A stretch of DNA of 64,000 nt from Setoptus koraiensis. Taxonomy: Eukaryota; Animalia; Arthropoda. The stretch spans positions 10,788,001 through 10,852,000 of the forward strand of contig CM106586.1 in assembly GCA_048013815.1 (NCBI GenBank), given 5' to 3'. A model generated the notes under the pieces. The model had not been told where the DNA came from. It worked only from the letters and a program-made list of their open reading frames with translations, and did no database searches. Within the stretch, counting starts at the first letter, position 1, and each line of letters starts with the position of its first letter. Positions 1,912 through 39,411 of the stretch are shown here, in pieces. A program made the position numbers and the translations under genes.

Positions 1912-3062
<1,151 letters not shown>

Positions 3063-3903
3063 ATTATAGCAATTTAATTAAATATATAGTCTTATCAATT
3101 ATGAATTCTCTAAATACGAGGAATCTATCTGTTCAGATTGAACTGACAATTGCGTTGTTGTTGATTCAGTTCAATGGTGTTGTAAATTTTCTTCAATGAT
3201 CGAGATATCCTCGGGTATAGGTCATATTTCATTTAAACTATCTATATATCTAATATTAGTCAATGAGATAGCCCACTTAAATATTATCAAAGTGCCTCTG
3301 GTGTCCTAGTTTCTGTTGTAATCCATTAAACTATAATCCTGGGCTATCACTAATCTATCTAATAGATTTCATCAGCTTACAAAATTAACGAGTGGTACGG
3401 TGGGATATTGGGTGCAACAAAATAACAGTTTGGCTTTGTTTTCTATAATTAATAATAATAGTAACTGCATCTATTTGTTCTTAATGAATAATGAATAAAT
3501 AAATATCCTAGCTATAGATTGAGATTGGCAACAAGATCATCCCTATCAGGAGGTTACTGCCATCAACCTGTGAAATGTAATCATACAGTATGATTCACAC
3601 TACCGCAATCATTACAGACAACGCATCAAAGCATATGTTTTTCTCGTTAGTCCTGCAGCTCAATAGTTAACCTGCTTACTAAACCGGTACTCACTGTTAC
3701 TAGCCTCTATGAGTTTTCTCTTATCAATACTATTTGTGCCCGCTGTATTTGACTAACATAACTGCAGGATCGCAAGAATGAATCTGTAGTGACAACTGCA
3801 CGAAATAAAAGCCAATTTTTTGTTGAATCACCATGAAACTGTTTGTATCAAATCATTCTTCTTATTCACTCTATAAATAGATAGCGTTCTCCAACAAATT
3901 ACA

Positions 3904-26990: not shown

Positions 26991-29900
26991 TCACTCCTTG
27001 AAACATATCGATTTGACGCGCTTCTCCTGACGGTGCCGCGATCTGTGATAATGGTGCTGAGTGGTGCTGATGGCCTCTGGTTCACTGGCTGCCGCCGGGC
27101 CTCGGTAGTAATCGCCGATGTTGGCCGCGGCATCCTCGTCCAGCAGCGACGCCTCGGGCGAGGCTCGTCTCGGCCCGGCAAAGTCCGCTTGTCTCGGCCC
27201 GCCGATCCTATCCGCCGGCGTGTGCTGGCCCAAGGAGCTGGCGTTCGCCTGCCTCGGGCCGCCGCCGACAGTTTGCGGGTTCTGGTTTGTTTGTTGCTGG
27301 CTTGAGTATCTCTTGAGTGTGTTGTCCTTGTTTATGCCCAATATCTGGCCGTTGATAGTGAACAGGTGCCTCGCATTGAGTTGCTGTTGTGCCTTGTGTT
27401 TCAATTCAAAACTCTCCGTGCGCGCGGTCGCCGGCGACGCGATTGGCGTCTTGGCGCCTCTATCGCTCTCACCGGTTTCCGGTTGTCGGTGTTCCGGTTG
27501 TCGGTGCTCCGGCTGTCGGTGTTCCGGTTGGTGTCGGTGTTGCGCGCCAGGCGTCACTGTTATCAGGTCGGTGTCCGCAGTGGCCGGCTTGCTGCCCGCC
27601 AGCCTGGTGCCGATGAGTCTGGCGAGGCCGTTGAGCGACGAGTTGACCTTACTGGATGGCGGTTGCTGCTTTTGGGCGCCCTCTCTCGGTCGGGTGCGCC
27701 CCAGTTTCAGCTGCACCAATTCCGACTTGGACACAAATGAGAGCAGCATTATGAGGACGCTCAGCGATAAACAAATCACGGCGTTGAATTTGATGAACAG
27801 TCTGGCCGCGTGCAGCAGGGTCTGCGATTCCGTGGGCAGCGCCACGAACAGCGGAAGCTTGAATTGCCGGTGCGGTTGCCCGTAGGCGTCGCCGACGGTG
27901 GCCGCGCCCGTCGGACTGGCCCAGTCGAGGAACCAGTCGTCGCCCTCCTTGTACCGGTCGAGCCACAGGCCGAAATAGAGCGAGCCGAGCGCCGGCCCGA
28001 GCCCGAAGTATAGCAAACTGAGCGCGGCGTGCCACACAATATTCTGTTTGCGCACCAGATTTGAGTCGACAAAAATTGTCGCCGGCGGCACCTCGTGCGA
28101 CGACGAACTGACCGACAATTGCGACCATTTCGAGCTGGCGCCCTCAACCTGTTGCTGCGGCGGGCCGGTTGTGCGCTGCAAACCGCTGTAGCGCACAATG
28201 AGATGGTGAAGTTGAGCCGATATGGCGAACCAGCTGAGCGGAAAACAAAGCGGCCCGATGAATTGAAACACGGTCACTATGAGCCACTTGAGGTGCGTCT
28301 GCCGGGTCAAATACGAATATCCCGTGAATATGATGCAATACGCTCCGAAGGCCAGCGACAGAATGATGTCTGGCGCGTTGATGCTGCCCGCCGTGCCATT
28401 TGTGTTGGTGGTCGATATTGAGGTGCCACCAAAACAGGCTATAATGGTGAAACTGAGCGCCACCGTCGAGCTTGCGGCACCCAAATAAAAGCGCGACAAA
28501 AATACCCTGTCCGACGACGAGAAGGCCTGAACAATGATCGAGGGCAGGGCCGTTTGCGCTATCTCGAGCTCGATGCCCAACACCAGGGCCACCAGAAACA
28601 GCATGCCAAAGCGCAACTGGACCTCTCTCGTTCGACAAAACGGCTGCCCGCACACAAACCGGATGTCATCGTCTCGCTCGCTCTCAACGAGACGCTCGTC
28701 GCGTTGCGGCCCGCCGGAAGCTGCGGCGCGGCTGCCCGTGTAGTGTTGGTTGAGTTCGTCGCGGGGCGCCTCGCTCGACAGCGGCAAAAAACAGCTGGCT
28801 GCGGCCAGCACTATCGAGAAGGCCCCACTGAAGATGAAACAGCTGAGATAGTTGAACATTTTGAAGGTGTTGGAGTCGAAGACGTTCGAGTCCGACGATC
28901 GCTCCGTTGCGCTCGACTCGTTCCTCACTGTTGCGCCCGGCGATCCGGCTCCATCCGGCGCATATCCGGCGCGCATTTCCGGTTGCTGCGTTCCGCCAGC
29001 GGTGTCCGACGACCACAGGCCCAGCGACCAGCCAGCCTGGGCCCAGCCGGCCGAGAGCATTTGTTTGAGTGACCAATGTGTGTCGTTGGTGGACACCAGG
29101 TCAATGCTGAAACCAATAGTTATGGGCAACAGTATCATGGGGGTAAAGATGGCCAGCGAGCGCCACCTAGAGTCCAGGTAGGGACACTCTAAATCAATGG
29201 CGACCATTATGAGCAAAGCGTCTAGCGTTATCCAGACAGTCAACAGCATTGCGTCACCCAAAAATCTCCACATCGTATACAATAGTTGCGTTTGCTCTAA
29301 ATCACCTATTGTCTCTATGCAAGGCGACAGGGGCACGTAACGGTTGTTGCGCCATATCATGCTGGCCGAACCGGAAGTGGACTGTTGTTGCTCTTGTGTG
29401 CCCTGGATGTCGCTGGCATCGTCGCCGCTGCTCGCCGGCTGCAACTGATACAATATCTGGGCCTCACACAATATCTTGCAATTGTCACTTCCGGCGGTCA
29501 TAACATTGGTCAACACAGAGGCTGTGGCAGTGGCAGCAATTGCGCCACTGTGCTGACCGCCAATATTGCTGGCCGCCTGCTGTAGTGTGTGCAGTCGACC
29601 AGCGTCCAGCGGTTGTTGTTGCTGATTGATTTTCACTTGCACAACCTTGCTGTTGCTTGCGTAACCGGAAGTGGTGCACCTAATCTCGCTGTAGGGCCTG
29701 TTGTCCACAATGAACGGGGGTATTGGCTTGAATTTGCAGTAAGAGTGACTCTGGGACCACGTCCTATATTTGATTGGGGGGCTGTCCAAGAATGAGGAGG
29801 TTGCGTCGTATGAGTTGCTGATTGTTGATCGGGTTTCCGTTGTCGCCGCCGCCGCCGCCCCCATACCCGTACCCGCTGAGGGCGAGCTGGCGCTCAACAG

Positions 29901-30370
29901 GTGTAAGCGCGACTCGAACTGAATGTGGCCACTGCTGGTCTGGTCATCGTCCTGATACTCCGGGTCTGGCAAGCCGCTTGCGCCTGTGCCGTTGTCGCCG
30001 CTTAGGAGCGTGGCCGACCTGAGATCGGTCGGGCCGCTTGCGGGCGCATTGTCTAGCGCGTTTGCTACGGCGCTCACCAGATGGGGCCCCGGCTGTGCCG
30101 ACTGCCTGGCTCGGTAGCCTGCCACCGCCGGCTCTAGAATATTCTTTTCAAGCAGCCGATTTATGATGGCCGGATTGAGGCCCTTGTCTGGCGAGCTGCG
30201 GGCGTTGGCCTGATTGAAGCACTGCTGCGGCTGCGACTCGCTCACGAAACACACCTGAACCGGCGTGGACAGTTGACCTGGCCGCTGATTTTGTAGAGCC
30301 ACTTCCGGTTGAGATCTTGGCCCGTCGTCTCCGGTTCTGGCCGCCAGAGGAACTTGTTGCTGTTGTTGAT

Positions 30371-30401
<31 letters not shown>

Positions 30402-31073
30402 CTGCTGCTGTTGCTGCTGCTGTTGCTGTTGTTGTTGTTGTTGCTGTTGTTGCTGGAGCTGGTAGGGCGGTTGCAACAGCGGTTGGCTGTGTTTGCTGTT
30501 AGTTGTGGTGGGTATAGTGGAGGAGTAATCGACAGACGGATACACATTGTTGGTGGCGTTCGCTGCTGCCATTATTACAGTGTCGGCCGAGCAAATCTGG
30601 CGACAGTGCGACAACAAAAATCTAGTTAGACTGTCGGCCGTGTTGTGGCGCTCGTATTTGTGGCAAGCGAGCTCGAGATCGTTGGGACACTTTTCAATCA
30701 TAATAGTTTGTGAGACGCAATCAAAAAGCGCGTCGGGATTTCGGGGTGTCTGTATGACGCGCGGAACAAACAACAGCGACGTGTACGCCACCGAGGCCAG
30801 CAACGAGGCCAGCGTTATGATTAATTTGAACCTGTTGAACTTGAACGCCACATACGACAACAGCGAGGCCACTATCACGCTCAATAGGCTTGTTTTGGCT
30901 CTTACGTAACAAATGACATTTAATTGCAGGCCCAAGTCTTGCATGTGCTGCTGCATGAAGGGCACCACACAGCTGAGCGACGCCACAAAACAAAATAGGC
31001 ACACGGTGAGGCTGTTGCGCCTCTGGGCCAGTATCTCCATGAGCAGCCTCGAGTCCTGGGGCCGCACACTCAT
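26991..31073 (-). CDS. MFSD6-like major facilitator superfamily protein with large Cys-containing loop and poly-Gln (1360 aa, intronless)
   Basis: ATG at 31073. N-terminal TM helices (LTVCLFCFVASLSCVVPFMQQHMQDLGL...FKLIITLASLLASVAYTSLLFVP) are typical of MFS_1-like/MFSD6. A ~480-aa loop with Cys pairs and a long Q tract follows, then many TM segments (WRFLGDAMLL...YFGLGPALGSLYFG). Confidence 0.75.
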
Positions 31074-31495: not shown

Positions 31496-33214
31496 GAAAG
31501 AATGCCAGTGGACAGCTCGCGAAAGTGCCAGCGCGTTAATAGATCGATAAGCAAACATGATGCCAATAAACAGACGGATAAAAGCGTGTGCACCTGTCGC
31601 GGCGGGGCGGCGTCTCGTTGGGCTGTGTTGTTGCCGTGCCAGTCGCTGGTCGTTTCCGGAAGTGCGTTTGTGTGTCAGTCGCAATTATGCGATCTTTGCA
31701 CTTTTGCTATATCTAGTCGATCTATTCAATCTGTTTAATCTATGCAAAACTGCGTCGCTAAACCGCGCTAAACCAACAACTGCCCGGCCAAATATGATGC
31801 AAACTGCAAACAAAACTACTGGCAGACTACTGGCCAACCCGGCAACTACTCGCCCGACTGCAACTCGCGACGGGCCCACAATGTATCGCTACACATCACT
31901 GCCAGCCACTGACTAACTGGCAATAACTGGCCAGAAATCACCTGTCGCCAGGCCGGGCATTGTTGTGAGCGCCGACGGCCAACAGTGCAGTGTGTATGTA
32001 AAGCTGCGCATATGTCTATATATATTGGAGTTGCTCGCCATTCGCCATTGAGCCATTCCAATGGAATGGCCACGATGCGATGGCTCGAAATAAAACGATA
32101 ATTTCGTTGGCGCGACCGCTGGCGTTGCGCAATGCGTTCGCTGGCGTTGCGTAATGCGTTCGCTGGCGTTGCGTAATGTGCGTTCGCTGTTATCGGCTTG
32201 CGTTGTCGTGATGCTGATCGTGATGCGGCTCTGGGCGCTGCGCCAGTTTGCTCACGCGGCTCGCCGGACTGGCTGTCAGTTGCGAGTTGCCTGTTGGTCA
32301 ATTGGCGGCGTCGTGTCCGCGCTGCCGGCGCTACGTTGGCCGCCATGAGAACGCTAACTATGGCTCAAAACTCTGAGCCGAAATTGCGCCTAACTGACCC
32401 CACCCGACACACCGAACGCCAATTTCGTCCGCCAGCGCTACAGCCGCCCAGCCCACATATTCGACCCGACGTATTCGACCCGACGTATTTGACCCGACGG
32501 AGCCGGCCTACTCGACTCGATCGGGTTTCCAGCGGCTCAATCGGGCCGGCGGACCGGACGGGCGCATGACGGCTCGTCCATGGACATTTCACGGGTCTCA
32601 GGCAGACGTGACCGGTCGATGGTCACACATCATCATGGCCGCTAACGAGCCATTGAATCGATCCGATTCAATCACTGAGTCGCTCACTCACACTCATGAA
32701 TTGGCGCTAATAACGTCGATTGTTCCCGCTCGCAAACAGTTCGGCCCGGCCGCGCCGGCCGCGCCGGCTGACCGCTCCGGTCCGGCAGTGCAACGCGAGT
32801 CTGGCGGCCCAACGAGAGCGTGGACGGTCGGGCGAGAGCGCCGGCGAGCCGAAACAAAACGCCAAGACCTCGTTTCGAGCGGCCGTCTCACCTTGATTTG
32901 TTCGAATGTGTCGGCGGCGGCGGCGGCGGCGACGGAGGCAGATGCAGCCGCGCCAGCTCCACACAACCGAAGCGAATGGATAAATAATGATTGTTTCTCG
33001 GGGCAGCTCATTTCTGCTCATTGCAGCCAACCTCGCTCATTCGCTCATTAGCTAATAACTGATAATAATAACAATAACTGCAAATACGCACTTTCCATCG
33101 CCTGTCCATGGCACGTCTCGGCCGACTGGCATGAATCACCTGCTGACAGTGGCTTCGACGCATTTGAATAAATTTGCTGCCTCTTATTCGCATTGTTCGC
33201 ATGCCCATAACTTG

Positions 33215-33266: not shown

Positions 33267-35734
33267 GGCAGCCGGATGGTCCCTCTGCATTATAGTTATA
33301 GTTTTACATTGGATATCGGGCCGCACGTTGGAATGGCGCCAGCACAATGACGCTAATTATACAGTAGTAGTAATTGAAACAAGTCAACCGTTTTTCCTGT
33401 ACGCGAGCTCAAATCCACACGTGAATATCACTGGCGGAAACTGCTGTTGTTGTATGCCGAGCAACCGACGGCAACAACAAAGTGGGTTTATCTCGCAATC
33501 AATCTCACTTGTTGGAGCCACCCAAACGGTCGGTATCTAGCCAATGCTGCCACTGCGATCGTCTAATCATCAAGCACAAAATTCATTCCAACTTTAATTA
33601 GTCAGCGGCAGCAGCGATTCTTAGGCGGCGATTCTCGGCGCCAGGCACAAGTGTAATCGCGAGTATAATTGCCCTGGATTAGACCCAATTATGACACACA
33701 GACGCATTTAAATCAACTCCGTTGATGAGCGAGCATTGGATCTGCCAATTGGCATCAGTCGCATGCTGCCAATGGCAGTTTGCTCGTCAATAACGCCACA
33801 ACTCTCGTCTGGGGTCTCACTCACAAATATACGCAAATATATCGCACATATTGTTGGCAAGGAGGCCATTTCCAGCTTAATTCACAGTGCTAATTTGCAG
33901 CGTTAATTTGCAGCCAAAGGCTGCAAATTAACAGTAAATCTGACAGTTGATTGCTGGCGATTGTGGCTCGCTAAAAATCGCTGGCGCCCAAGAGCGACAT
34001 TCAATGTTATTAGAGCAATGACAATTGCCCTAATAATGTGTGGCCGATGCGACACAAAACTACCGTCGCTGGTGTTTATCTGCGTTTATCTTGCCGTGAA
34101 TTTTCAATTGTGTCAATAGTACTCGCCATCTAGAGCCCAACATGAGCTTGCGCGGGCTGTGTGAGTTCTCAATTGAGTCTAATTGAGAATTCAACAATTT
34201 CGCGTTGTCGCCAACAATTATCCCAAGTCGATGCGATAGATTTCGGCTCACAATTTTGTCAGTCAGCAATCCGACAATTGTGAGGTAACTGAGACACACT
34301 CGCCTGCTGGATACAGTCGACTGCTGTCATTGGAGCGGACTCGCAATGCCGTTGCTCGGCTTTTCGAGCCTGTTCGCATGTATTCATATTTGCATATCGT
34401 ATATTCGTGTATTATCTGTACCGTCACTGTGACATTGAGTTTGCGCAAAAACTAAAAGTTATTAGCTTGAGCCCCATCCAACTGACAGTTGATAAGCTGT
34501 CATATATTTTCTTTGCTGTTTCTTTTTATTTTCATTCGATCATCTGCTAAAATTAATGATAGACGTAACAAAAGTTTCACTTTTATGTCTTTCGCAAGCG
34601 TGCTGTCGCTGTTTTATTATTTGCTGTTGTAATAGGCAAATTAACTTGGCAACATCAACTAACGGGTTGTTTATGAAAAATGAGATTTCGTATAATGGGA
34701 GCGCTCGTCGCGGCTGCGGCTGCTGCTGCTACAAAGCCAATGATATGATACAATTAATAGATGAGTCGCGATGACTCGCGAACGAAATGATCTATGGCTG
34801 ATTAAGAAATAAGCATCTTGTATATATCATATAATAGTTTTGTTGTTTTGTTTTATTGTGAGCGCCAACATTATCGCATAATCTTATTTGTCGAATAACA
34901 ACAAAAACAAAAAGTGTAGCATAGCTAGCGAGAAAGGATTGCAATGGCAACTACTGCAAATAGGCATGCTTGTTCGTTTTCAGCAAGCTAGCAGTGGCAA
35001 CTTAACACTGGCGTCATGATGATAAGGGGCTGATTTGAGGCGAATCCCAATCTCGTCTGGATACACGATACAGGCAATAGACGAAGCATATAAAGAGAAT
35101 AAAGAGAAAAGTTTATTTTGAATAATAATAATAGTTGGAATCGTCAGTGCAGCGTCGCAGCACAATCACGCCAAACACAGTGAGAGAGAGAGAGAGACAG
35201 AGAAAATGAATATCAGTTTTCTTTGTTCGCACATGCCTCATTTCCATTCAATGAGCAAGTAGTCTCATCATCGGCGACAGGCAAATTGTTATTTATATTT
35301 GCATAATTAATTGATTGTGATATCAATAACAACAACTTTACAATATCCAATCATACAACATACAGCAGCACGGCGTTTTGACAGAATAATGCAGCGCTCA
35401 AAAGTTCATCACAATGTGTGAAAGAACCAAGACACTCTTCGAACAGGCCACCAAACACAATAGAATTTATCACCCTCAACTAATTAATTATATGTAGACC
35501 TAAAACTAATTAAGGCGAAACACCATCACCATTATTATTATTACTGTTGTTTTGTACCATAGAGACATTGCTATTTTAGCTCTCTATTCGCATCGTATGC
35601 GTGGGCGTAATTAGACACGATAGGCGAGACATAGCGTTGCATTTAATCAATTAATTATAGCGCCTAAGACACAAATATAGCTGAACCAACGACTGCTGCA
35701 TCAATTTATACACATGGTGATAGATTGGACGAGG

Positions 35735-35917
35735 ATGGATAAAGAAGGTCAAAGTTTGGTTGTCAACTATCTCATACTCATACTTTTGTTGGTCATTTTA
35801 TGGATAATGTACACAAACGTAAGTGGCGACACTGAGCCTCTCGTAGCTCTCACCATCTTCTTTTTTTCCCCTCAAATTGTCACCAATATTCCTCGTCACT
35901 AATGAGTCCAGCCATAA
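35735..35917 (+). CDS. Sarcolamban/sarcolipin/phospholamban-family SERCA-regulatory micropeptide (~29 aa)
   Basis: ATG 35735 encodes MDKEGQSLVVNYLILILLLVILWIMYTN, then GTAAGT at 35819. The likely acceptor CCAG ends at 35911 and is followed by CCA TAA. Ungapped from Met1 it shares L8, N11, aromatic 12, I14 and W23 with sarcolipin; QSLVVNYLILI parallels phospholamban QNLFINFCLIL. Confidence 0.75.
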
Positions 35918-38374
35918 ACGATAAATGTTTTACTCAGGGCTCACATGAGCACTATTACATATATGCATACCATTTATACATGTGTATCTTCGAATAGATG
36001 CAACAATTATCGCGCATAGTATCAAGTCCATAATTAGTACTGCATACAGTGGTGTCATAATTGTTTTTCATGGCTATTCATTGATTGAGACGCTCAATGC
36101 CTAGACGCAAACAACGTACTACAGTGTAGACATTTTGCTCATATGCAAAGTGAATATGGAAAAAAAGTTGAGTCACATAGACTTAGACAATTGTAGAAAC
36201 CAGTGCAGCAATTTTTTAATTTGAAAAGGCATATTTTTCACTAGTTGCAACATGTACATTGCTTGCATAGATAAACAGTTTTTCAAGGTTTATGCTTGAG
36301 TGGTATATATCTGAGAGAAAAACTCGAAAACAAGCTTGCCGATTTTAGAGCGTCACATCTTTAGGGGGCTTAGTGGTAGTTGTGGTAGTAACAGTTGAAA
36401 ACATTTAGTGTGGCATCAGTTTATCCATGTAAATCAAGTGCATGCAGATTGAGAAGTTGATGCGGTCCCAACATCAATGTCACACTAACGTATGTCATTA
36501 CTAACGGATTGCCATATATACCATACCTCTAACAGTATCTAATATATGTATATATCGCGGGGCAAGAGAGGCTAGAGAGTTGGCACAATTATTCTTATAA
36601 TTCTAAGCTCACTTTCACCACTGGCACGAAAAACTTACTATGTCTCTCTGTCTGTGTATAATCAAGTTGCCTCGTAGTAGTATTTTCTTTCAAACATGAA
36701 GGAACAATGGATTTAGTTAGAAGATAGCAAATAATCAAATGTTATTTTCCAGTGGCAAAGGTATATATGGGTTAGTTGCTAGAGAGGACATCTCCATACA
36801 TCTCATAATCTCCGCACATTTGCGACACTCAAGTGACGCTAGATCTAGTTAATAGTGAATATTATGTAGTCAGCCCTAATCCGAATGCTGATGATATATT
36901 TTCTCACTTAATCAAGCGATTAAACGTACTAATTGTTGCTACTGTTCATCACTTGACATCATCAATGACCTCTATGGTTGCGATAAAGCCCCTATTTGCA
37001 CGACAATAGTGATAATTCTCAAGTGATTTGATAGAGACTAAAATTGAAAAATTCAGCCTAGTTTCATCGTATCGGAAGAAAATCCTCAATAACAATCGAA
37101 ATTGTAACAATCACAGTAAATAAAAAAGCTTTTAAATACTTCAAAGTATTAGTACAAAACATAATATATAGCAAGCTCAAGCCACGAAGAAGATTGTTGT
37201 GAGAAGTTTCAAAGATGGACAGAGAGGTTTTGTCGCTACTTTATGTGAATTATGCTATTCTAATTGTTCTATTAACAATACTGTGGCTTATATACTTCGG
37301 GGTAATAAGCTAAGAATAAGCGGAAATAACACTCATTTATTAGATTATATAGATTATAAAACTCACAAAATAGATAGATTGCTCAACATTAGTCGGTAGA
37401 TATAGTTATTACATAATTGTAAAAAACCAACAAACTAAACAATTGAATGCTTGTTGCATACAGGCATGCCTAAACTGTCACCCAATGTATACACTAATTC
37501 TGATAATTTTCTGTCTCATCTCTTCAAAATAACTTTCAGATGTAAGTTGCTCATATGTATTGACGTAGTGCCGGGATCAAGCAATCCCAATGTAAATACA
37601 ACGTTATGGATCCAAGACAGACCCTGTCGAGCTATGCTGGCTCTTTGTAAGACGAATATCTGGCTCTGCATGGTGGTCATAAGTGGCATCAAATTATGAG
37701 GCCACTGGTCATCATAATATCAATTTTGATATAAATGTATTTATTGGAATCCATCACCATCAAAACAACTCATCAGGTCTATTGCCGCAGTTGGTTGGCT
37801 GGTGCTGTGAAGGCAATATTATTCTAATTTATTCGGGGACGCTATGATGATACAGTAATAAAACATCTCTGTTCAGTATTGAATATCATGATTAAATTGT
37901 TAGTACATTAGATTATTACTACATGTATGTGTGTCAGTAGATTAGAAATTGCTGTCTATCGATCAATCAGAGACAAGTTTATATCAGCGTAGACATTTCA
38001 AAAGCGAATAGAGAGACTAGACTAAGGACTCCTCGTTAGTAAGGAGGAATATCAATTGAAGATGAAGGGAAAACAAGTTATTTCTCAAAAATAGGAATAT
38101 TCAAGTTCCGAAAGACAACAATTTTCAAATATCTATCAATGAGATTCGAAGATTTGTCTCAGTCTATTTTCTCTTTCACTATATGCTATTTTCGTCGTAG
38201 ATCCTGCCTTTATAATATGGTTGAACATAATAGTTTGTTGATAAAGTTGGCGATATCTTTATATTATATTACACAATATGACATAGATTCTACTATTAGT
38301 GAAATTACGTCACTATCAATTTGATTGTTGTGAAGTTGTTCAATTGGAGAGTACACATTAAACACTACTTCTGG

Positions 38375-39411
<1,037 letters not shown>

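Follow-up and report, generated by a model that had tools for sequence, protein, structure and literature searches.

The window examined here is a stretch of 64,000 nucleotides (nt) of Setoptus koraiensis DNA (assembly GCA_048013815.1, contig CM106586.1, positions 10,788,001 to 10,852,000, forward strand), and approximately between its positions 33000 and 38400 it appears empty. This interval is AT-rich with a GC content of 0.30-0.47, mostly 0.33-0.38, and no long open reading frame (ORF) is found there in the ORF list of the window. An earlier reading of the letters, termed here the original prediction, had proposed that a small ORF (smORF) for a single-helix micropeptide of the sarcolipin/sarcolamban type, a regulator of SERCA, was hidden in this mite intergenic region. 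SERCA is the calcium pump of muscle, and in insects and vertebrates such peptides are known to restrain it. The question raised by the locus is therefore whether such a gene exists and what it encodes. Transcription, selection and a match to the Sarcolamban family (PF21898) all agreed with the proposal, and it is very probable that the locus holds a genuine micropeptide gene under selection that belongs to the sarcolamban family. In the fuller reading, to which we assign a probability of roughly 85%, an acariform mite carries a sarcolamban gene whose two first exons and shared last exon encode two peptides, A and B, presumed to regulate SERCA.

Exons and splice joints

An ATG at 35735 on the + strand opens 28 codons, MDKEGQSLVVNYLILILLLVILWIMYTN (smORF A), the last of which ends in phase 0 at 35818 and is followed directly by a GTAAGT donor at 35819-35824. 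A second, paralogous smORF that was absent from the original prediction, smORF B at 37215-37301, lies on an alternative first exon, where ATG 37215 opens 29 codons, MDREVLSLLYVNYAILIVLLTILWLIYFG, with a phase-0 end at 37301. The two start codons, at 35735 and 37215, share a context with A at -3 and G at +4.

Five public runs contain this stretch, four of which were compared over positions 33400-39399. The runs come without a library or tissue description and their RNA or genomic nature was judged from coverage and joints. X1 covered the whole region evenly at a depth of 106 in one 5.4-kb contig and so behaves as genomic DNA, while X4 and X5 consisted of discrete blocks only with GT..AG joints between them and therefore behave as RNA. 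A joint from 35818 to 37540, skipping 1721 nt with GT..AG borders, had a depth of 11.8 in X4 and 8.5 in X5, and a joint from 37301 to 37540, skipping 238 nt, had a depth of 15.1 in X4 and 7.2 in X5. The latter cut was read as 37300 to 37539/37540, and moving the one ambiguous base to the right gives GT..AG. Depth across both introns was zero in the RNA-derived contigs. Exon 1a is thus transcribed and the GTAAGT donor at 35819 is used. The junction contigs extended only 30-31 nt into the shared exon, as expected of a de Bruijn assembler at a point where a common downstream exon is reached from two different upstream ones. The features of the gene are listed below.

35292 to 35818, + strand: exon 1a, a first exon (contigs X4, 35292-35818, and X5, 35624-35818, both running on into 37540)
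35714 to 35734, + strand: possible 7-codon N-terminal extension MVIDWTR (in-frame upstream ATG, C at -3)
35735 to 35818, + strand: smORF A, codons 1-28 (PF21898 match; 14 synonymous and 0 amino-acid changes relative to contig L002, see below)
35819 to 37539, + strand: intron of the exon-1a isoform, 1721 nt, GT..AG, with exon 1b inside it (X4 and X5 joints)
36844 to 37301, + strand: exon 1b, alternative first exon, with a minimum 5' end (contigs X5, 36844-37300, and X4, 36848-37300)
37215 to 37301, + strand: smORF B, codons 1-29 (27 of 29 residues the same as in the B-like smORF of contig L001, see below, despite 24 nucleotide differences)
37302 to 37539, + strand: intron of the exon-1b isoform, 238 nt, GT..AG (X4 and X5 joints)
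37540 to 37857, + strand: shared last exon (contigs X4, 37540-37855, and X5, 37540-37857)

The shared exon opens with an ATG (37540-37542), which supplies the C-terminal Met of both peptides, followed by a TAA stop (37543-37545); the remainder is 3' untranslated region (UTR), with an AATAAA at 37857-37862. After splicing, peptide A is MDKEGQSLVVNYLILILLLVILWIMYTNM followed by the stop, 29 amino acids (aa) consisting of MDKEGQSLVVNYLILILLLVILWIMYTN plus Met, and peptide B is MDREVLSLLYVNYAILIVLLTILWLIYFGM followed by the stop, 30 aa consisting of MDREVLSLLYVNYAILIVLLTILWLIYFG plus Met. The spliced transcripts are at least 845 and at least 776 nt long, neither carries an ORF of more than 30 codons besides its smORF, and no other sizeable conserved ORF was found on the exon-1a or the exon-1b transcript. 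The 5' end of exon 1a at 35292 is a minimum. A (GA)n-rich simple repeat at 35171-35217, just upstream of exon 1a, breaks assemblies, and since the X4 contig may merely break there, 35292 may not be the transcription start.

Much of the original prediction was borne out by these data, including the smORF at ATG 35735 with its 28 codons and perfect GTAAGT donor, the in-frame upstream ATG at 35714, and the read-through of the donor in the ORF list, which hides the smORF within a 62-aa ORF (35714-35902). The 3' end differed from what had been proposed. The original prediction had flagged the 3' exon as uncertain and had suggested acceptors at 35912 or about 35937, both of which are rejected as the RNA-derived joints go to 37540. 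Of the proposed junction 35818/35912 the donor is used and the acceptor is not, and of the proposed 29-aa peptide ending in Pro and a stop the length stands while the last residue is Met, then the stop.

Conservation of the two peptides

Peptides A and B were identical at 17 of 28 aligned residues (61%) with one single-residue indel, and 13 of the 17 common residues differed in codon, e.g. Ser AGT/TCG and Leu TTG/CTA. Nonsynonymous divergence (pN) between the two was 0.28 with synonymous sites saturated, and the DNA flanking A gave no alignment to that flanking B. When the window was searched with A by tblastn, B was returned with an E-value of 9e-7 and the next best match with 0.013, so B is the only real match of A in the window; no third copy was found by tblastn within the 64 kb.

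Conservation biased towards synonymous change, which the original prediction had named as a check on the smORF, was evident in a close relative represented by a 520-nt ENA contig (L002). Fourteen of the 84 nt of ORF A differed with 0 amino-acid changes, and the chance of 14 out of 14 changes being synonymous is approximately 1e-9, assuming that about 23% of random changes are synonymous. A more distant relative is represented by L001, a 4.8-kb contig of SRR10674646. The locus had no match to L001 at the DNA level at E <= 1e-3, and the comparison was therefore made on peptides. An A-like smORF at 2899-2982 of L001 was identical to A at 19 of 28 residues, and a B-like smORF at 3602-3688 was identical to B at 27 of 29 residues (93%) with 24 nucleotide differences, while the 60-nt flanks were 23-28% identical, about the level of unrelated DNA. 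The two smORFs have the same order and strand in L001 as in the window, and the gene upstream of them is the ortholog, at only 33% identity, of the MFS_1_like gene that precedes the locus in the window; the L001 locus is therefore syntenic. At the sequence level peptide B is far better conserved than the neighbouring MFS_1_like protein, and the substitution patterns indicate that A and B are both under strong purifying selection. Of the two, A is the more variable and B is nearly invariant, with a one-residue insertion ahead of the Asn.

An A-then-B pair (1325-1408 and 3007-3093) was also found on L004, a JGI metagenome contig. Exactly one acceptor of the form CAG followed by ATG-TGA lies downstream of B in each contig (L001:3832 and L004:3597), and, if used, it would give these peptides an end of Met and a stop as in the window. 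As read from these contigs, the layout with two first exons is conserved in both. This layout, in which the common terminal exon contributes one codon, is conserved in at least three mite-like genomes, and it is not known to have been described for the sarcolamban family.

With a two-sequence profile built from A and B, 32 homologs at E <= 1e-3, 4 of them at <= 1e-10, were retrieved from a set of 1.84 billion representative proteins. The family consensus is MDRExQSLxVNYxILIxLLxILWxLYxG. In an alignment of 29 members E4, L18, L19 and W23 were invariant, while conservation was 90% or more at S7, N11, Y12, L22 and Y26. Of the 20 hits extending beyond the conserved peptide, every one goes on with V and 16 with VS. 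This continuation corresponds to read-through of a GTAAGT-type donor, and a phase-0 intron at the same codon across the family therefore follows. An annotated intron is found at this point in the spider Stegodyphus mimosarum, where exon 1 ends in ..LYFG, the intron is approximately 36 kb long and exon 2 encodes YLI and a stop.

Few members of the family are named, among them the spider protein KFM62563.1 ('hypothetical protein, partial') and OQV23198.1 of the tardigrade Hypsibius exemplaris. In the latter (P0025) the peptide forms the C-terminal end of a 143-aa 'hypothetical protein' model, and in P0015, from a JGI contig (L004:1196-1615), the read-through ORF carries the label 'fucose 4-O-acetylase-like acetyltransferase'. 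A second sarcolamban-like smORF of S. mimosarum was observed at L003:53085-53168 (KK114493.1), ending in ..DKEASSLVMNYVILILLLLILWVLYLG and then GTAAGT. It lies approximately 43 kb downstream of the annotated copy, outside its 33-aa gene (10001-46245), and is apparently unannotated.

The same comparisons bear on the start codon of the exon-1a product. Translation might begin mainly at ATG 35714, the first in-frame ATG, giving a 36-aa product (MVIDWTR followed by MDKEG...) instead of 29 aa. Over the 21 nt from 35714, L002 differs by only 2 synonymous changes, although it has diverged in the sequence that precedes them, and members from other lineages carry 2-4 extra N-terminal residues of a similar kind (MAID.., MAVD.., MLVD..). 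Two substitutions are however too few as proof of selection on the extension, and the context of ATG 35714 is weak with C at -3, whereas that of ATG 35735 is as in every mite ortholog examined. In L001 the 48 in-frame nt preceding A are unrelated and lack an ATG, L004 likewise lacks one in the 24 nt read ahead of A, and most family matches begin with MD[KR]E. A main product starting at 35714 is therefore unlikely, and a 36-aa isoform is possible in this species and in that of L002. The 29-aa form starting at 35735 is the one considered below.

The mite origin given in the original prediction agreed with the neighbouring coding sequence, which points to an acariform mite. The Evi5/TBC protein of the window shared 65% identity with its counterpart in the eriophyoid Fragariocoptes setiger, the nearest named relative, and 52-56% with the corresponding proteins of further named acariform mites. 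The sarcolamban locus is flanked by the MFS_1_like gene (- strand, 26991-31073) and a GOLPH3/GPP34 gene (- strand, 38375-39399). The former is a single ORF of 1360 aa with a partial MFS_1_like match limited to residues 21-622; its N-terminal part is the one 33% identical to the L001 ortholog, and it appears to be a fast-evolving, unusually long MFS-like protein. The GOLPH3/GPP34 gene has one intron (38799-38968) with an RNA-derived CT..AC joint skipping 170 nt, and its 3' end faces that of the sarcolamban gene at a distance of approximately 400-500 nt. Contigs of X1 and X2 part from the window at two points, an (ATT)n run (35548-35550, region 35530-35550) and position 38153, and run on into different sequence, which may reflect a second haplotype or structural variant, and X1 has a 6-nt GCTGCT insertion after 34718. 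An Rfam scan of the window gave no match.

Family membership and probable function

Peptides A and B were compared with 24,736 Pfam models, and PF21898, which has a gathering score of 27 bits, was the sole match of each. Eighteen of the 29 aligned family members matched PF21898, the best being P0032 with 27.7 bits, above the gathering score, which was itself a homolog from the search with the A and B profile (E 4.8e-4 in 1.84 billion proteins). Since A and B fall below the threshold and their homolog P0032 above it, membership in PF21898 is transitive, not direct. Sarcolipin (PF05366) was matched by 4 of the 29 members with a best E-value of 5.8e-4 and Phospholamban (PF04272) weakly by 4 with a best E-value of 0.006, while every other Pfam family was matched by single members only; A and B themselves had no match to PF05366 or PF04272. 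Forty-one stretches of the window with the same shape of polar head and hydrophobic core served as controls, and none of the 41 matched Sarcolamban, Sarcolipin or Phospholamban.

The family profile was aligned with Drosophila sarcolamban A (SclA) by hhalign at 90% probability and 32% identity, and with human sarcolipin (SLN) at 62% probability without gaps. In the latter alignment L8, N11, the aromatic residue at 12 and W23 were superposed, a register that agrees with the original prediction, in which L8, N11, Y12, I14 and W23 were placed at the sarcolipin positions without gaps. The SERCA-regulator motif consists of L31, N34, F35 and I38 in phospholamban (PLN) and of L8, N11, F12 and I14 in SLN. 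The corresponding Leu-x-x-Asn-aromatic..Ile residues are L8, N11, Y12 and I14 in A and L9, N12, Y13 and I15 in B, and the tryptophan close to the luminal end, which does not vary among the aligned members, is W23 in A and W24 in B. Both peptides open with 7 polar residues, after which comes a run of about 19-20 hydrophobic ones with a mean Kyte-Doolittle value of 2.7 for A and 2.3 for B. The C-terminal tails are YTNM in A and YFGM in B where sarcolipin has RSYQY, and the approximately 7 residues ahead of the helix stand in place of the cytoplasmic domain of PLN with its PKA/CaMKII sites. On these comparisons the mite peptides are classed as sarcolambans and not as SLN or PLN proper.

Several results weigh against the reading of A and B as SERCA-regulating sarcolambans. 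Peptide A scored 19.4-19.5 bits against PF21898 (E 8.6-8.9e-4), under the cut-off of 27, and peptide B just 6.5-6.7 bits (E 8.4), which is insignificant. A HMMER profile search of the PDB sequences returned no sarcolipin, no phospholamban and nothing at E <= 10; the connection with the vertebrate peptides accordingly depends on the Pfam cross-matches and hhalign. The SLN and SclA sequences used for hhalign are corroborated in part, in that their C-termini match those published (PMC9338278) and the N-terminal part of SLN matches that given in the original prediction. Three strict MEF2 sites (CTAWWWWTAG) were found in the window, none of them near the locus. Should the 5' ends of the contigs be genuine, 4 upstream ATGs fall in the 5' UTR of exon 1a and 5 in that of exon 1b; in X5 the exon-1a contig begins at 35624, past all four of the out-of-frame ATGs that precede smORF A. 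Translation of A and B is also something that we infer. A search of the ESM Atlas with peptide B, which returned generic small bacterial membrane peptides with scores of at most 0.8 and phospholamban at rank 74, was uninformative.

Each of the two mutually exclusive first exons carries the codons for nearly a whole single-pass micropeptide (28 for A and 29 for B), presumably under a promoter of its own. Either first exon is joined in phase 0 to the shared last exon, from which come one Met, the stop and the 3' UTR. In the proposed mechanism the short head of each peptide, MD[KR]E, with acidic and basic residues, is presumed to be cytosolic by analogy with sarcolipin and phospholamban. It would be followed by a single helix, in which L-x-x-N-Y lies in the first half and W-x-x-Y towards the far end, and by a very short tail. 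By homology with sarcolamban, SLN and PLN, the helix would lie in the membrane of the endoplasmic or sarcoplasmic reticulum and occupy the M2/M6/M9 groove of SERCA, with contact through the Leu/Asn/Tyr/Ile face and the luminal Trp..Tyr. The apparent Ca2+ affinity of SERCA would be lowered, which would tune calcium re-uptake in muscle. By analogy with the known families, regulation of SERCA is a likely function of A and B, held with somewhat less assurance than the existence of the gene.

The two peptides could instead be real and conserved yet act elsewhere than on SERCA, for example on a different P-type ATPase or some other membrane protein, in which case the likeness to sarcolamban would reflect shared ancestry or helix chemistry without a shared function. 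The scores of A and B below the Pfam cut-off and the PDB search without a sequence match to SLN or PLN are compatible with such a target, and single-pass helices are poor in information. This is nevertheless improbable, as the residues that count when PLN and SLN inhibit SERCA (Leu, Asn, the aromatic residue, Ile and the tryptophan) are those conserved across the family, consistent Pfam matches were obtained only to three families of SERCA regulators, and arthropod sarcolambans that closely match members in length and in their W/Y positions inhibit SERCA in vitro. A chance ORF on a non-coding RNA or untranslated leader, with a hydrophobic frame arising from AT-rich sequence (GC 0.37; 46 comparable 28-residue hydrophobic stretches occur in the window, A and B among them), is ruled out by the conservation pattern, since all 14 substitutions in A against the close relative leave the amino acid unchanged, B is 93% identical where the flanks and the neighbouring gene have diverged beyond DNA alignment, and the 32 homologs reach to spider and tardigrade while 0 of 41 control ORFs match Sarcolamban.

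Returning to a sarcolamban gene with two presumed SERCA regulators as products, separate regulation of the paralogs is possible because each has its own first exon and presumably its own promoter. The alternative first exons may tentatively be seen as a one-locus switch that would give different SERCA regulators to different tissues or stages, which can be likened to the separate PLN and SLN genes of vertebrates. Such a pair on exclusive first exons would constitute a compact natural system for the differential deployment of two SERCA regulators.

The family and its function were already known and nothing found here is unexpected in kind. The new elements are a corrected gene model, the second paralog, and the alternative first exons with a one-codon shared terminal exon, and a well-supported chelicerate (mite) sarcolamban is added to a family known mostly from Drosophila. 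As the spider, tardigrade and metagenome labels illustrate, ORF-based and gene-model pipelines miss or mangle such genes. The family is strongly conserved in sequence outside flies and therefore offers a much better search profile than the fly-based Pfam model, namely a non-dipteran panarthropod sarcolamban profile whose members are missed or mislabelled by current annotation. This strong conservation fits poorly with reviews that cite sarcolamban and phospholamban as a case of function kept with little sequence conservation. The eriophyoids, to which the nearest named relative belongs, include crop pests, and muscle calcium handling in this group is of some applied interest.

Comparison with known SERCA regulators

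The L-x-x-N-F..I motif in the transmembrane part of vertebrate phospholamban (PF04272) is essential for SERCA inhibition (bioRxiv 10.1101/2020.07.19.211243), and a motif of this type is common to the mite peptides. They differ from phospholamban in being without its cytoplasmic domain of approximately 25 residues and its Ser16/Thr17 phosphorylation sites. Vertebrate sarcolipin (PF05366), at 31 aa, is similar in length to the mite peptides and coincides with them without gaps at L8, N11, the aromatic residue at 12, I14 and W23, while the mite peptides are without the RSYQY luminal tail. The sarcolipin coding sequence is not known to be interrupted by an intron, unlike those of the mite peptides.

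Drosophila sarcolamban A and B (pncr003:2L, PF21898) are, like the mite peptides, single-helix peptides of 28-29 aa, and in both animals two paralogs occur at one locus on RNA without further coding capacity. The Drosophila smORFs lie on one bicistronic transcript and have been described as redundant (PMC11475943), whereas the mite has mutually exclusive first exons and a common last exon that gives the final Met and stop. The luminal end of SclA, Y-L-I-Y (PMC9338278), resembles W-L-I-Y in mite B and W-I-M-Y in mite A. At two positions the mite peptides retain the Asn and Trp of SLN, in place of which Thr and Tyr are found in the fly.

The tryptophan region also resembles that in the sarcolambans of other non-dipteran arthropods. 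Those of bumble bee, Daphnia and Triops are 33-45 aa long and inhibit SERCA1a in proteoliposomes (Bak et al., bioRxiv 10.1101/2020.07.19.211243). At 29-30 aa the mite peptides, known here from their sequence, fall short of that length, while those three have been assayed on SERCA1a. A basic or polar residue precedes the helix in the non-dipteran arthropod sarcolambans and in the mite peptides alike. The arthropod sarcolambans keep the SLN tryptophan in a W-L-L motif that is followed by Tyr in two of the three, the bee and the tadpole shrimp (bioRxiv 10.1101/2020.07.19.211243). In the 33-aa bumble-bee peptide this is W26-L27-L28-Y29 (bioRxiv 10.1101/2020.07.19.211243), to which W23-I-M-Y26 of A and W24-L-I-Y27 of B correspond, and the family member P0008, also of 33 aa, has W26 and Y29 exactly as in the bee peptide.

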